A stretch of 63,359 bases of DNA, the filler included, from Reticulomyxa filosa (taxonomy: Eukaryota; Protista; Foraminifera), in assembly GCA_000512085.1 (NCBI GenBank). It is 19 parts of 19 records of this genome, joined end to end, with 100 filler letters (N's around TTAATTAATTAA, not from the genome) between each part and the next. Parts side by side here need not be neighbours in the genome. Positions count along the whole stretch, not along the records: positions 52,341 to 60,408 come from ASPP01009364.1; 18 more parts are not named here. One strand, 5' to 3'. Below the pieces are notes generated by a model. That model was not told the origin of the DNA, searched no databases, and worked only from the letters and a program-made list of their open reading frames with translations. A program made the translations under genes and the position numbers. Positions 3,387-60,321 of this stretch are shown piece by piece (positions within the stretch are counted from its first letter, which is position 1; each line of letters starts with the position of its first letter).

Positions 3387-5520
3387 AAACCTCCACTTTC
3401 TTTTCTTCTTCGTAATTATGATTGTTCTATTACGATAAATCACATTGTTTTATTTGATTCTTAAATTTAAAAAAAAAAAAAATTAAAAAAACAAAACATC
3501 ATTACAGAGTCATATTCAATATCCGATTCAATGGTAGCACGAATTGCAGGAATATCTTCACTCTTCACATCATCTTTCCATTCCTTTTGATCCAACAACC
3601 ATTCTCTAAAACCATTTCGTGTTAAGCGTTTAAATTTTCCAATAATTTCAGCTTTACCATTTTCATCGTTTTCTTCCCACCGTTGCATACTTTTGTCCTT
3701 CTTTTTATTTATTATTATTATTATTATTATCTTATGATTAAATATAACTAAACAATAGATAATCAAACTTCATTGATCTTTTCCAATATCAATATCGTAT
3801 GCATTGCCTTTTGATGTTGTCCACCAAACCTTTTATTAAAAATCTTGAGTGCATTTTCATAACTTTCCTTTGCTTTAGTTTTGCTTCCTCTTGCAAGATA
3901 AATATCTCCTAAAAGAACATAAGATTCACCAACGTGTGGATGATCACAATCTAATTTATTTAATCTCAATTTCAATGCTTTTTCTCCAAATTCAATTGAT
4001 TTATTCAAATCATTCTTATTTTTAAATGCACTTGCCAAATAATGGAAAGACCAACCAATATAAAGATCGTTATCATTCAGATTTTTAGATCTAATTTTCA
4101 ATGATTTTTCAAAAAATTGAATTGCTTCTCTGTATTTTCATCTTTTTCTAATATCAATCCCAGCACATCATAAGATTTTGCAATCTCTAAATCAAAGCTA
4201 TTGCTCTTGTCATTGACCAAAATTGTCAAAGCTTTGTTGGCATATTCTCTAGCTTTGTTTATTTGCATTTTTCCTTTTATCCACACCAATCCCAATTCAT
4301 TCAATAACCACACAACAAATATATGTTTTTTACCAAATTCCAATAATTGAATATTCAATGCCTGTTCAAGATATTCTATTGATGTTTCATATTCTCCTGT
4401 TTCAAAATATGCCATCCCCAACCAAAACATCGATTTTGCAGAGTGTGTGTGATTTTCGCCAAATTGTTCTAATAAAACGTTTAAACCTTTTTCGTGATAT
4501 TCAATTGATTTGACATATTCTCCTTTCCCACGAAGAACGTTCCCTAAGTGACAGTAACAAAGGGAAACATCTATTTGATTTTCGTCCAATTGTTTCAAAT
4601 AAATATTCAATGCTTTTTCATGATATTCATATGCTTTGTCATATTCTGCTTTCATACAATAAACTCTTCCCAAACTGTCATAAGAACTGGCAACATCATT
4701 GTGACTATCGCCTACATTTTTTAACTGAATTTCCAGCGCTTGTTGGTGATAGTCAGATGCTTTGTCGTATTCTCCTTTCCCGTTATAAGCAATCCCCAAT
4801 GCACAGTATACCTTACTGACATCAATATGATCTGATCCCAATTTATCTAAGATTATTTTCAACGCTTTCTTATTGTATGCAATTGATCTGTCAAAATCCT
4901 TTTTTGCAAGAAATGCCTCTGCTAACCAGAAAAAAGCGTATGAGACTTCAACATCAGACTTATCTAATGTTTGCAATCTAACACAAATTATAAAACGAAG
5001 CAATGAAATTGCCTCATCGAAATTTGATTCCTTACATAAATCCATTCCTGATTCCATAAACTTGTTTAAATCAATGGGCCATGAGACAGTGAAAACAGGT
5101 TGTTGGAAAGTATAACAAATAACAGATTTTCTGGTATGAATAAGGTATTGGGTAATGTGAAAATGACCAATTCCATTAATGACACAATCAATAGCATAAA
5201 CACATCCATCGATTATAATATTATCAAATGTGATATTTTTTGAATGAAATGAATAAACAGTATATGGTGGAATTACTTTTTTTTCTTTCATATATTTATG
5301 TGAATTAATCATCATTGTAAAAGGAATGTTTTGAAAAAACCATCGATCATTTGGTCTTGCAAGTTGATCAAGATTGATTGAAACAACCACAATTCCGCTC
5401 TGGTTTTTTTTAACCATTTGCTCAACTATTGTGTGGGCTATCTTGTTTGCTTCATTCCACGGCTTATTTTGATCCAATTCAATATTTTCGATATCTTGTT
5501 TTTCTTCATCATCTTTTAAT
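3387..5520 (-). CDS. TPR-repeat protein followed by a conserved helical module (partial, multi-exon)
   Basis: Kinesin-light-chain-type TPRs (H.DVA.SY..LG.VY...GEYDKA..YH.KAL.I). Frameshift in the A-run near 4135-4138 joins ORFs 4098-5477 and 3763-4101. Phase-0 intron 3701-3768 continues into KDKSMQRWEE...WLLDQKEWK. A further intron starts at 3505. Both ends truncated. Confidence 0.85.
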
Positions 5521-52536: not shown

Positions 52537-53723
52537 ATGAACAGTATTAAAAAGGAAAGTGAGAATATAACTTCACATTTGGTAATATCTTACCATATAA
52601 ATAAAGATACACTCACCCCATAAACGGACACATAAAAACAAAAAGTCAGAAAAAAAGATAAAAGTAATTCTTCAAAATTGGGTTCGAATTTTGGCTATCA
52701 AATTGGGGTGGGTTTCTGACTTTGACAAAATTGTGATCAGATATGTTAGTAACACGTTTTGTTTTGTGAAAGTTAAATGCAAACGTTTCTTTGACATTAA
52801 ATTATTTATTGAAAATACAGACCAAATGCTTTAAACTATTGAACACATTACAAGGGCATGACGACATGGTAACCGGTGTAAGATTTTCACCAGATGGTCA
52901 CAAGATTGTTTCCTCATCAGCGGATAAAACAATTCGAATTTGGGATGTTGCATCAGGAAAACAAATTCAAAGTTTTCAAGGACATTTGGATTGGATCAAT
53001 GTTACAAGATTTTCACCTGATGGATATACAGTCATTTCATGTTCATGTGACAAAACAATCCGATTATGGGATGTGAAATCAGGAAAAGAAATAATGAGAT
53101 TGGGAGAATATCCGTTTTGGATATTTGATATAAACTTTTCTCCAGATGGCAAATATTTTGTGTCAGGCTCTTCTGATAAAATATTACGAATATGGGATGT
53201 AAATTCTAGAAAAGAGATTAAAAAATTAGAAGGTCATGTGAATGCTATATTGGGTACGCAATTTTCTCCAAATGGCTTAATGATTGTATCGGCATCAGAA
53301 GATAACACAATTGGTATATGGGATGTGCAAACAGGCAAAAGATTGAAGGAATTAATAGGACATACGAATGCTGTAATACGTGCAAAATTTTCTCTAGATA
53401 ATAAATTTGTTGTATCTTGTTCAAAAGATAAAACAATTCGGATTTGGGATGTGGAATTAGGAAAAGAAATACAGAATTTAGGAGGACACTCAGATGTCAT
53501 ATGCGATGTAAAATTCTTTCCAGATGGTCAAACTATTGCGTCATGTTCATCAGATTATACAGTTCGAATATGGGATGTAAAATCAAGAAATGAAATACAA
53601 AAATTGGAAGGACATTCTGATGAAATAAGATGTATGGATATTTCATCCGATGGTAATACTATTGTGTCTGGTTCTTGGGATTATACTATTCGAATCTGGG
53701 GATTACAAAAGGTGAGCAACTAA
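52537..53723 (+). CDS. WD40-repeat protein (7 blades) with N-terminal Trp-helix motif
   Basis: Exons 52537-52581, 52646-52744 and 52821-53723; GH..V...FSPDG..IVS.S.D.TIRIWD repeats. Confidence 0.93.
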
Positions 53724-54328: not shown

Positions 54329-57300
54329 TTACATGAAAGCTCGTAGTAACAAACAAGCGAACAAAATGGACAAGTTCACATGTACAGAGACCGAAAATCC
54401 TGCGGACACCGTCGTTTTGGTAAACATATAAGTGCCTTGGCATGTTTGATCGTGTTTAAGGCTAAAGCCTGAAAAATCACATTCATACATTCAATATACA
54501 GCACATATATGTATACATATATATTTATGTATGTGTGTAAGTTCCTTTTAATGATACAAACTTGTACTACTAATACAGTGCAACGACGTTACAAACCTGG
54601 ATCAATATTATCTTTGAACGCCGCAATAAATGAATACGGAGTGCGCTGATGAAGCATAGGTAAAGGACTTGGCATAAACTGCAAGAACTTTGCGTCCAAA
54701 AAGGCCCGAGATCTCTTGGGTATGAATGTACTTGTACAATTGGCTCGAACTTTTCCATCGTGTGCGGTCACATTTCCACAGTCTAACAGCTGCACAATGT
54801 TATGCTGTCCCTTTTGTGGCAAATAATACAAAGCAAAGGTCCAATGCGAGATCAGATTTGTGCCAACAATGCCCACTCCCGTCATCGATAAGTCTCCACT
54901 AACATGATAATTACCAAAGAATGCCACTCCAAACCAACCCTTTGTTGCAGGTCCTTCAATAGAATACTTTACGGTGCAGTTGTTTCCGTCAATTACCAAT
55001 CGAAAGGAAATATTTGCATTGTCACAGTCAGACAAGCTCTTCACCTCACTTGTCCACATTTCATTTTTCTTAATGCCCAACATGCTGCACGCAGAGTTGT
55101 TGAATGCAACGCGGCTCACTTTTTGCGCGTTAAATGCAATTTTCAATCCTTTCTTGCACGCGTCGCGACTATTTGCAACAAAGAACTTGGTGCCCGCGGG
55201 CTCGACAATCGGGAAGCTGCTATAGCACTTTGTCGAAATGTTGCAATTCTTCCAACTCTCGTAGTCATCCACCAAACATCCCGTCAACGAACCATCGCAC
55301 GACGTGAAATCCACTTGTTCCAAATCCGACACGTTATATATTTTATTGAACAAGTTCTGTCTTAAAGACAAAAACGACTCGTTTAGAGGAATTACAATCT
55401 ATTACGTATACATCTAAAGCGTTACTTTTTTTTTTTTAAGAGATAAATAAATATTATATATACGTATATGTATGTATACGTATATATGTATATATGCATA
55501 TATATAATAACATGGCCTTGTTCTGGACTGACAAATACAGAGCTTGTATTCCCAAAGATATTGCCACTAAAGCCTTGCAAAGCATTTTGGTCCAAATAAA
55601 AGTGGACAAGGGAGGTCATTCCGTCGATTGCAAAGGTATTTCTGGCGTGTTTGGCCAGCACGTAAGGGGCATAATCTTCCTGTTTGCCCTGGCTGTAAGC
55701 GCCCTTCAAGAACGCGTCACTAAAGACCAATTGCGCCACCTGCACGTTCGACGTCTCTCCAATGGTCAGCGTTTCAAATTGCAGCGTGTTCACGTCCACT
55801 TCGACATCTCGGTTGTATTGACTGTGCAGCGTTATCGTGGTAGCCCTGTCGGTCTTGTTTATCAGCTCTATGCGCACTCCGTCGTTGGCAAGAGAGTCGG
55901 TTCCTTTTTTTTTTTTTTTTACTTGTTTTTTATTTTTTTTTAAAAAAACAAAACAAAACAAAAAAAAAAAAAAACCTAAAGATAAAGCTGATGTCGCCTC
56001 CAACGCTAAGATTTAAATACTGAGGACCCCAATAGAAGCGATACGTGTCATTGCCTTTGTATTGATAAATGATGGCAGGATGAGGGAGGGTAATCGCAGG
56101 ACCATTGGCACTGACAACAAAGTCCACGTCCACGAGGTTGTCAATAGCAAAGCCATTGGGCAGGTCGTCGGTAATGTCGATGCGATGCAAGAACTTGTCG
56201 ACATTGTTCTGGAACATGCGAGACCCCAGCTTGGTGAATGATCCCGTGGTAAGCACGGTCGCACTGTTGTAGCGACGGACTGTGTAGGAAATGGTATACG
56301 TGATATTCGAGCTGATCAAATACCACCCCAATAACAGTCGCTCCGAGTTGTGCGTCTTTCCGTTCAAATACGTTGCCAAGTCCTCCACGCTGTCAAAGTT
56401 TCCAAAGAACTTCTCTGGGTAAGGGTCGTACGCATAGTTCATGGCTGACCAGTTCATTGAATCAAATGAACTTCCACCGTATTTCAATGTGATTGGATCA
56501 GCATTTACCAACTCTCTGTTGCCTTTATTATTATTTGTTATCATTTGTTATAATTTGTTATAATTATTATTAAAAAAAAAAAAAAAGTAGATATATTTAA
56601 GTAAATCATTTCAGTCACTAAAAAAAGTATAGTTAGCAACTTAACCAACAAACGGACGAAGTGGTTCATCCAAATGGTAATAACTGACAAAGCATCCCAA
56701 ATACTGGGCAATCTGTGGAGAGCCTGTTTGGTACGAAATACCGCGATATTCGACTAACTGTTGCCATATCAAAAAGTACCTCTCCACTCCCATGTGATGC
56801 AACATAAACATCGGGTCGAATGTCGTCGTTTCGAGATCGATGAATGACCCTCCAACCATGTTGTGGACATTGTTATGAGGAACTTCAAACCTGTTTTGTT
56901 TGTTTGTTTTTTAACTTTTTTTTTTTTTTTAAACAAAACAAAAAAAAAATTGAGCCTAAACAACCTTTCTCACGTATACGTGTGTTGTTGCAACTCGTAT
57001 TACACATAAAAAAAAAAATAAAAAAAAATAAATAAAGACATGTAATTAAAAATAATCCAATTATCAAATTCGAAAGCTTGGAGCACTTGCTTAAAAAAAG
57101 AAAAGCTGCTACCCATCCTCGTGGCATTAAAAAAATTGGAAGCAGGATTTCGACACGTGTAGTTACAATTGTAGCCGGCGGTGAGGCCACTAGTGATCTT
57201 GACCACATCTTCAGGAATGCGATAGTTCCACCAGGGATTTCTGTATGTCTTGTTTCCCACGGTAAAGGTCAGTCTTGTGGCCAAATCAGGAAAAGACGTG

Positions 57301-58014
57301 AGGTTGGAATTGGCCCAATTCCAGTACGGCACTGCCAAACTCAGATTCCATCGGCGCAATGCGTTTTCAAACTGCAGCAGTCCTAACCGATGCCATGTTG
57401 GAAAACGTGGGTCACTGTGGAGACAACATGATGCATTTCTCTCATTGAAATCGTCTGTGATCAAATAAAAATCCACATGGTTTTTTTTTTATGTATACAC
57501 TTTTTTTTTACGTATACACATTTTTTTGTTACCATAGCAATCTTGAAACCAATCAGGAGCACCATGAAAAGTTGCCACGTAAGGCCAAGTGTTATTTTTG
57601 TATGCAATTTTTCGTTCATCTTGTTGCTGGGCGCAAGCCAATGCTTTCATTAAATTTATTTTTTCATCTTCCGTTATGTATTCCACATTTTTGCGAACTC
57701 GATTGCCTACTCAGCAAAAAAAAAAAATAAAGTTTGTAACGTATACCTTTTTTTTTTTTTTTGAACAATGCGAGTAATCAAAAAAAAAAAACAAAACCTG
57801 ATGCTGCCTCTACGACACTGTACGGTGGAACTCCTCCAAAACAATCGTCATACACTGCCGCGTTGTTCCAAATCTGAAAGTGGTTTGTGTCAATTTGACA
57901 ATGTCCAGGAGCAAACGCTGAGGTAGCCCAGTACGCACAATGAGTGTCATTATTTCCGTTTGACAAGCCAAAATTTGCAAGCAAACAAAGCCAAAAAATC
58001 TCTTTCCACTTCAT
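54329..58014 (-). CDS. Secreted or GPI-anchored haemocyanin/tyrosinase-like type-3 copper protein with cupredoxin-like and DOMON domains (~976 aa)
   Basis: Eight exons: 58014-57798, 57706-57533, 57454-57040, 56890-56646, 56522-55976, 55903-55512, 55398-54597, 54468-54329. CuA: FHGAP..CCLH..FPTWHR. CuB: FEVPHNNVH..DPMFMLHH. The exon 5/6 junction needs one base removed (T-run near 55979). Confidence 0.9.
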
Positions 58015-58485: not shown

Positions 58486-59651
58486 ATGGACATGATTATC
58501 AATGAAATGGCTGCCACAAAACTACAATTGGTAAGCTTCCTTAAAATCTTTCGTTACGATACGAATAAAAAAAAAACAACTTTTTGTTTGCGATAAACCA
58601 GCCAAAAAAATGTGTAAAAGTAATAATTAAAAATTGGGCTCGAATATTCAATGATAAATTAGGATGGATTGATGACTTTGTTAAAATCATCATGAAATAT
58701 GTTACGTTACTTATTTTTTTACTTTGCAAGTAAATTAAATATGTTTATTAATAAGCAAACATCTAAATATAGATCGGAGTTCAATTATTGAAGATTTTAC
58801 AAGGACATGTAGGTCCAGTAAAAAGTGTAAGATTTTCATCTGATGGTCATAAAATTGTTTCGTCGTCAAATGATAGAACAGTTCGAATATGGGATGTTGA
58901 ATCTGGAAAATTAATACAAACTTTTAATGGACATACTGATTGGGTTAATGCAGCAGAATTTTTATTGGATGGAAATACTATTATTTCATGTTCAGATGAT
59001 ATAACAATTCGATTATGGGATATGATATCGGGAAAAGAATTGATAAAAATTCAAGGACATGGAAATGTAGTACGTGATTTACATATTTCTCCAGATGGAA
59101 AATATATTGTATCTAGTTCAGATGATGGAACAATAAGATTATGGGATGTAGATTCTGGGCAAGAGATAAAACGTATGGTGGATCATTCGATGAGTGTATT
59201 AAATTCACAATTTTCAGTAGATGGTCAAAAAATTGTATCATCATCTGCCGATGAAACAATTGATTTATGGGATGTAAAGTCAGGTGAAAGATTAAAACAA
59301 TTAAAAGGGCATTCAGATTATGTAACTCGTGCAAAATTTTCTCCAGATGATAAATATATTGTATCTTGTTCATGGGATAAAACAATTCGAATATGGGATA
59401 TATTAACAGGAAAGGAAATAAAAATTTTGGAAGGACACATATTCTTTGTGAATGATATAAAATATTTTCCAGACGGTCAAACTATTGTATCTTGTTCAGA
59501 TGACAAGACAATTAGATTGTGGAATGTGAAATCAGGTCATGAAATACAGAAATTGAATGTATATTCTACTGTATCAGGAATTGACATTTCACCAGATGGT
59601 AATACAATTGCATCCGCTTCTCAGGATTGTTTGATCCGAATTTGGGAATGA
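58486..59651 (+). CDS. WD40-repeat protein (7 blades), paralog of 52537-53723
   Basis: Exons 58486-58530, 58602-58700 and 58773-59651; same 45-nt and 99-nt first exons and same repeat pattern. Confidence 0.93.
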
Positions 59652-60321
59652 TACAATCATATATCTTTTTTAATCAAAATTCTGTTTTGAATTGTTTTGT
59701 ACATCTTTTTCAATTTTTCTTTTGAAATATGAAAATGGAATTAAATTCTGCATTCTTTGGAATATTGATAACGTAACTTTTTACTGTATCTAGTCTAGGG
59801 GCAAAACGCAAAACACTCGAATGTGGATAGCAATCACATTGAGGCATTTTTTGGTTAATTATCAATTCCATTGGTTTTAAAAATACCAATTGGATGACTT
59901 GTTCAAATATGTATCTATACTGCCAGTTTTTGCTGGCAATGTGCTTATAAAGTGTGAACAATGTACTGAATTTTGATTTAAGTAAGTTTGGAATGTTTGT
60001 GCAATGTACAGACGTAGAGTTGATTTGTTACATAATTATAAGCAACAACATCTTTTTTTAAATAAACAAAAGTACTATATCCATAGGTTCAGAAAGAAAC
60101 ACATGTACGACACTTTTTAAAAGTTATTTTTATCAAATATACAAATAAAAATCCAATAAATTTATTCTCTTTTTGAAATTGAGTTAAATCTAGTGAACAG
60201 CTTTGTGAACATTGTATTACATAATGGCATGATTAAGACTATTTTGAAAGCGTAGAATGTTTGTAATACAGTAGGTGCAAAGAAAACTGAACGCCTAAAA
60301 CATATCTTATGATGATAATTG

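Follow-up and report, generated by a model that had tools for sequence, protein, structure and literature searches.

The gene described here lies on a contig of Reticulomyxa filosa that forms one piece of the window, by which we mean the whole stretch of DNA analysed (63,359 nucleotides). It extends from 58014 to 54329 on the minus strand, has eight exons (Table 1) and encodes a haemocyanin-like protein of about 975 amino acids. Its parts are, in order, a signal peptide, a dicopper core, a mollusc-type beta-sandwich, a middle domain, a phytocyanin-like domain, a DOMON domain and a GPI-like tail. The first-pass annotation had placed a complete molluscan-haemocyanin-like functional unit at 56060-57706. 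The motif region is real, but the gene runs beyond it in both directions. What had been suggested to be a single-unit haemocyanin relative does have a core and beta-sandwich nearer to mollusc units than to tyrosinases of fungi, plants or bacteria, but these make up the N-terminal half of a longer anchored protein, to which exons 6-8 add about 440 residues and a hydrophobic tail. Two stand-alone WD40 reading frames of seven repeats flank the gene (52791-53723 and 58788-59651, both plus strand), with no evident link to it.

Table 1. Exons and other features of the R. filosa gene; all positions are those of the window.
Feature	Position	Strand	Content
Host piece			R. filosa contig, 8068-bp
Exon 1	57798..58014	-	Signal-peptide-like start (about 20 aa) and Cys-rich N-terminal segment; similar starts in homologues
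Intron 1	57707..57797	-	Phase 1, in Gly codon, 11 nt before Arg of R-K motif
Exon 2	57533..57706	-	RVRKNV motif, first CuA His (57566), disulfide Cys (57539)
Exon 3	57040..57454	-	C-C-x-H (thioether Cys 57425, putative; His 57419), third CuA His (57392), remaining CuA half
Exon 4	56646..56890	-	CuB His 56877, 56865 and 56796; conserved Glu (56886); Asn after first CuB His
Exon 5	55976..56522	-	Core end (Y-x-Y), beta-sandwich (about 56346-56065), placeholder Leu (56229), start of middle domain
Exon 6	55512..55903	-	Middle domain; 40% identical to paralogue
Exon 7, first part	54597..55398	-	Phytocyanin-like cupredoxin without type-1 copper ligands (about 55398-55123)
Exon 7, second part	54597..55398	-	Bulk of predicted DOMON domain (from about 55020), conserved Met (54885)
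Exon 8	54329..54468	-	Final DOMON segment, conserved His (54454), GPI-signal-like hydrophobic tail, stop

NCBI splits the gene into two hypothetical proteins, RFI_12948 (P0002, 399 aa) and RFI_12947 (P0140, 604 aa), and the public annotation thereby hides it. The second CuA His is missing from these models, which break off after exon 4 and patch over intron 5. They also lack exon 8, which is present as the same exon in the R. filosa paralogue. With exon 3 ending at 57040, the spacing before the CuB helix is ten residues, as in haemocyanins. The window protein was searched exon by exon, and the stored P0002, P0140 and P0128 from the foraminifer Bolivina argentea stood in for the joined protein. 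Three full-length homologues, P0128 and the marine contigs P0013 and P0015, are intronless and carry the same parts in one reading frame; the long architecture is therefore real for the family.

The introns had been called host-style; introns 1-4 are GT-AG, with phases that preserve the frame, which intron 5, as assembled and with the evident splice sites, does not preserve. Its canonical donor at 55975 is in phase 2, while the acceptor at 55904 needs phase 1. The same intron of the paralogue (contig L001) is in phase 1 and has one T fewer at the donor. In the window the surplus T sits in a short T run adjoining long homopolymers, a difference typical of an assembly slip, which we consider its likelier cause. 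Were the base genuine, this copy of a real family would be broken or shortened, either a functional unit secreted on its own or a pseudogene of recent origin, as joining donor 55975 to acceptor 55904 meets a stop after 42 codons. We judge this quite improbable: exons 6-8 contain no stops and share 40-44% identity with the paralogue, and the frame would likewise be kept by use of GC donors (55988, 55997) or of a more distant acceptor (55846).

Dicopper core and beta-sandwich

All haemocyanin motifs listed in the first-pass annotation are found in the listed order in exons 2-5. The six copper-ligand His are likewise present, and their codons lie in the CuA and CuB motifs of a tyrosinase domain (PF00264), which makes the protein a type-3 copper protein. 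Pfam assigns exons 3 and 4 to Tyrosinase (E 2e-13 and 5e-13). Their top PDB matches are mollusc haemocyanin units, with 37-58 bits per unit compared with 30-34 for the best tyrosinases. A Cys two residues before the second CuA His, where the sequence suggests a thioether bond, and a shielding domain at the C terminus assign the protein to the type 2 polyphenol oxidases (PPOs), all of which are marked by these two features (PMC11803259). The fold combination had been described as known mainly from mollusc oxygen carriers; a mollusc domain subtype does occur in this protist, but shield and thioether as such are general.

The disulfide pattern follows that of haemocyanin in part. The Cys pair of the first core disulfide is present, but the D-Y-C Cys of the second (PMC3658974, Table 1) and its partner are absent, and the Cys before PLRPF is not that of haemocyanin. 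The disulfide of the beta-sandwich is missing too, and other Cys have been gained. Next to the first CuB His, all family members have Glu and Asn/Asp, residues tied to tyrosinase activity (PMC11803259). Departures beside the copper ligands of the window copy comprise Ser-Asp after the second CuA His (57416-57411), Phe before the CuB Asp-Pro motif (56850-56840), where relatives have Met, and Met-Gly after the last His (56793-56788), which the R. filosa paralogue has in common.

Exon 5 alone gave no match in Pfam, the PDB sequence search, a word-indexed search or the Atlas. On a mollusc-only beta-sandwich profile it scored 23.3 bits, where shuffled sequences did not exceed 6.4 and the C-terminal domains of fungal and bacterial proteins scored about 0. 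When exon 5 and four homologues were combined into a profile, the PDB sequences retrieved were all mollusc haemocyanins (E down to 2.5e-12 for single units). The R. filosa paralogue and a Bolivina homologue pass the cut-off of Pfam Haemocyan_bet_s, while the window copy stays below detection; of the two profile searches suggested at first pass, only that for Tyrosinase was thus positive in the window gene itself. The domain is accordingly the PF14830-type beta-sandwich of molluscan haemocyanin (type j), as had been proposed. By alignment, its Leu corresponds to the haemocyanin placeholder, and this Leu is kept in four of the five family sequences. Structural comparison with octopus FU-g (1JS8) gave a TM of 0.85 for a Bolivina model folded from an alignment that included mollusc rows, against about 0.52 for fungal pro-tyrosinase. 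Transcript P0011 of B. argentea equals P0128 minus about 143 residues (382-524), almost exactly the beta-sandwich, and may be an unshielded splice form or a mis-assembly.

The C-terminal half

The middle domain, about 150 residues between beta-sandwich and cupredoxin, had no match by Pfam or hhalign and no confident fold in the predicted structures. Its identity as a first FU-h-like cupredoxin is unsupported (hhalign 0.3%). The model of RFI_12947 comprises 453 residues with a mean pLDDT of 45, and of about 50-85 across cupredoxin and DOMON. Its cupredoxin has a phytocyanin fold (Z 9.7 to umecyanin, 7.5 to the KLH FU-h tail). Foldseek returned a snail haemocyanin as top match, and profile comparison with FU-h-type tails gave 93% by hhalign. 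By sequence, the domain is nearer to plant phytocyanins (E 1e-4) than to the FU-h tail (0.57), and is at most a candidate for direct orthology with the latter. The blue-copper ligands (His, Cys, His, Met/Gln) are lacking at the aligned positions; the disulfide Cys pair is kept.

A DOMON fold is predicted further downstream. The RFI_12947 model resembles cellobiose dehydrogenase (CDH) cytochromes (Z 8.0 and 7.8) and dopamine beta-hydroxylase (DBH; 7.5), and the Bolivina model points to the same family (Z 8.1-9.2), with the haem-less DBH DOMON as best match. Together, these two independent models match CDH cytochrome, PDH cytochrome, DBH and EbdC at Z 7-9, with a pLDDT of about 50-70 and values near 8 being borderline. 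Neither Pfam nor the PDB sequence search gave a sequence-level match. All five sequences contain an invariant Met and a late His, including exon 8 of both R. filosa genes, at positions that we take to fit those of CDH. Sequence and models taken together, the domain probably binds haem b. Met/His ligation is the mark of haem-binding DOMONs, whose haems carry out interdomain electron transfer (PMC10691727).

The C-terminal tails appear GPI-like in the window gene, L001, P0128 and P0015, and form a transmembrane helix in P0013; anchors and signal peptides were called from hydropathy and pattern. Tandem arrays of 7-8 units and soluble decamers, as in molluscs, do not occur, since every full-length member has one unit and a C-terminal anchor.

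Homologues and relation to molluscan haemocyanin

Searching 1.8 billion representatives with exon 3 brought up multi-unit haemocyanins and, much closer, a small number of single-unit proteins, namely the R. filosa paralogue, transcripts of B. argentea, which has at least two paralogue lineages, and marine sequences. The paralogue lies on another contig (L001) and shares introns and a repeat with the window gene. This element of roughly 50 bp, near the ends of both contigs (window about 60264-60314, L001 about 3512-3564), is probably an interspersed repeat. The NCBI model of the paralogue, ETO23759.1, misses the start of the CuA exon and the last exon and has two misplaced splice sites (discrepancies at L001 1-140, 1495-1667 and 3050-3200). 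Pattern scans of prokaryotic genomes and JGI metagenome contigs, which are insensitive, yielded no relatives. Viral contigs L005-L010, several of them labelled GVMAG, contain distant tyrosinase-like genes (24-32% identity) not close to the family. The marine transcripts L011 (P0059), P0062, L012 (P0048) and P0081 encode single haemocyanin-like units; P0059 reaches 55.6 bits on the mollusc beta-sandwich profile, and P0059 and P0062 apparently carry two cupredoxin-like domains. Their hosts are possibly crustacean, and they may represent another undescribed family.

In a tree of 53 catalytic cores, the foraminiferal family forms a clade (100/100), as do the mollusc functional units to its exclusion (99/98). 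The two are weakly supported as sisters (92/66) and join two marine transcripts with a unit-plus-cupredoxin layout (96/81), among rows collected by likeness to the window gene and with no identified tunicate or brachiopod sequence. The tree is unrooted and leaves out 40 long or redundant rows; a quick tree of 93 rows agrees. Grouping of the foraminiferal clade with FU-h was rejected (AU 0.022), so the family is not nested among mollusc units. Grouping with the fungal-type sequences, which the first-pass annotation had named, together with a missing beta-sandwich match, as a refutation of its claim, was rejected as well (AU 0.010).

The best matches outside the family are mollusc haemocyanins, as they would be if the gene were a mollusc contaminant or had recently been acquired from a mollusc. 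Such an origin is extremely improbable and largely refuted by the paralogue on the second R. filosa contig with its shared introns and repeat, by the homologues in the independent foraminifer Bolivina and by the position of the clade outside all mollusc units. The gene is thus a resident nuclear one, as first thought. As the clade lies outside the mollusc units and the protein is a single anchored unit lacking two haemocyanin disulfides, it is neither contamination nor haemocyanin proper.

Intron 1 is identical in position and phase to the intron before FU-a in three mollusc contigs (L013, L015, L017 Argonauta hians). It is absent in Physella (L016) and in L004, a gene of the foraminiferal clade. 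Phase-1 introns are common after signal peptides, and the match was spotted post hoc, with a rough chance of 0.6% before biases and a few per cent after. For these reasons the correspondence is no more than suggestive.

Compared with molluscan haemocyanin units, especially FU-h (type j PPO; 1JS8, 3QJO, 9KZL), the foraminiferal protein shares the dicopper core, C-x-H, the first disulfide, the beta-sandwich with its Leu placeholder and a copper-less phytocyanin-like domain downstream; with FU-a it shares the phase-1 intron before the R-K motif. It differs in having one anchored unit instead of 7-8, in its Cys pattern and clade, in the insert of about 150 residues before the cupredoxin and in the DOMON domain. 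Tunicates and brachiopods have known single-unit relatives of haemocyanin (PMC3730353, PMC3658974, PMC9395347). Tuphoxin, the 'urochordate haemocyanins' and clade B tyrosinases are single secreted units, some with a copper-less cupredoxin (PMC9395347, PMC3658974, PMC3730353), and a role as matrix phenol oxidase, like the one favoured below, has been proposed for the Tuphoxin group (PMC9395347). That group differs in being animal, in carrying a TSP1 domain instead of DOMON and in having no anchor described. Fungal long tyrosinases, plant catechol oxidases and Burkholderia-type enzymes (groups i, k, l; PMC11803259) have the thioether, a shielding domain and the logic of a latent pro-enzyme in common with the foraminiferal protein, but its shield is of the mollusc subtype, the structural match is lower and the fungal-type grouping was rejected. 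The haem DOMON proteins (CDH cytochrome, CYBDOM) share the DOMON fold and fittingly placed Met and His, and DBH likewise joins a DOMON domain to a copper enzyme. The partner of the DOMON domain is here a coupled type-3 copper site, whereas elsewhere it is a flavin, a cytochrome b561 or an uncoupled copper monooxygenase.

Possible function and significance

The reading we favour, with about an even chance of being right, is that of a secreted, glycosylated, membrane-anchored type-3 copper pro-phenoloxidase with a built-in haem electron relay. The two coppers would bind O2 as peroxide, and the Leu of the beta-sandwich would bar phenols as long as the domain is neither displaced nor cleaved. Once open, the site could oxidise tyrosine or catechols to quinones, which may cross-link the surface coat, organic lining or cyst wall. 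Haem b of the DOMON domain would pass single electrons from an outside donor to oxidised (met) copper, so that it could bind O2 again. The middle domain and the copper-less phytocyanin domain would be spacers or assembly modules. This pro-phenoloxidase is suggested by the six His, C-x-H and the shield with its placeholder Leu, by the activity-linked Glu and Asn/Asp in all members (PMC11803259), by 23 N-glycosylation sequons against about 11 expected, and by the DOMON fold (Z about 8-9) with its Met and His. A single unit with an anchor is ill-suited to a circulating carrier, and among the single-unit animal relatives described, the nearest, tunicate Tuphoxin, has a copper-less cupredoxin and a putative role as matrix phenol oxidase (PMC9395347). 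P0011, which may be mis-assembled, lacks exactly what an unshielded form would lack. On the other side, the same Glu, Asn and Leu occur in true haemocyanins and so cannot separate enzyme from carrier, the DOMON assignment comes from borderline models whose best match in Bolivina is haem-less, and tyrosinases as a rule work without a protein reductant. Second-shell residues of the window copy are, moreover, unusual, and a frameshift may precede its C-terminal half.

Rather unlikely, in our estimate, is a tethered reversible O2 binder, a buffer or sensor on the cell surface in which the haem domain would repair oxidised copper. It would agree with haemocyanin units being nearest in fold and sequence (the model compared having been folded with mollusc rows in its alignment), with the retained placeholder Leu and with the paralogue lineages of B. 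argentea, a low-oxygen sediment species. One site per anchored protein of roughly 110 kDa would store little O2, however, there is no multi-unit chain for cooperativity, and the family also occurs in freshwater R. filosa. We regard as improbable a haem-to-dicopper oxidase, in which electrons from Fe(II), ascorbate-like donors or membrane cytochrome b561 would enter at the DOMON haem, O2 would be reduced at the closed copper pair for O2 scavenging or metal oxidation, and phenols would never enter. A shielded site and a conserved probable haem domain do lie in one chain, and DOMON haems transfer electrons between domains (PMC10691727). Since the cupredoxin has lost its copper ligands, the haem would be the sole candidate for electron entry. 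Two domains lie between haem and copper, placed unreliably by the model (pTM 0.59), and we know of no type-3-only site that performs haem-fed O2 reduction. Sequence cannot separate pro-phenoloxidase, O2 binder and haem-to-copper oxidase.

Titles and abstract openings, from a literature without most subscription papers, contained no report of a mollusc-subtype unit in a protist or of a tyrosinase-DOMON fusion, and we found no description in foraminifera of a surface-anchored haemocyanin-like unit combined with a probable haem domain. The known relatives of the mollusc haemocyanin unit are animal (PMC3730353), and where the unit came from whose duplication gave rise to mollusc haemocyanin is an unsolved question (PMC7931591). 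Tentatively, the foraminiferal dicopper-haem protein and mollusc haemocyanin may come from the same single-unit ancestor, with the DOMON haem coupled to the type-3 site. If so, this ancestor had the core, the beta-sandwich, a cupredoxin tail and a 5' phase-1 intron, and the protein has a redox architecture without a described precedent among type-3 copper proteins, which may serve in O2 handling in low-oxygen sediments. A rhizarian clade beside the mollusc units that has an FU-h-like cupredoxin, and possibly shares the FU-a intron, would provide an outgroup for the origin of the haemocyanin unit; it implies an early transfer between animals and foraminifera or, alternatively, an old eukaryotic gene with many losses. 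A type-3 copper site, a probable haem DOMON and a membrane anchor fused in one protein make up a new redox layout that can be tested, and the family is a candidate for the hardening of foraminiferal organic walls or for O2 management.
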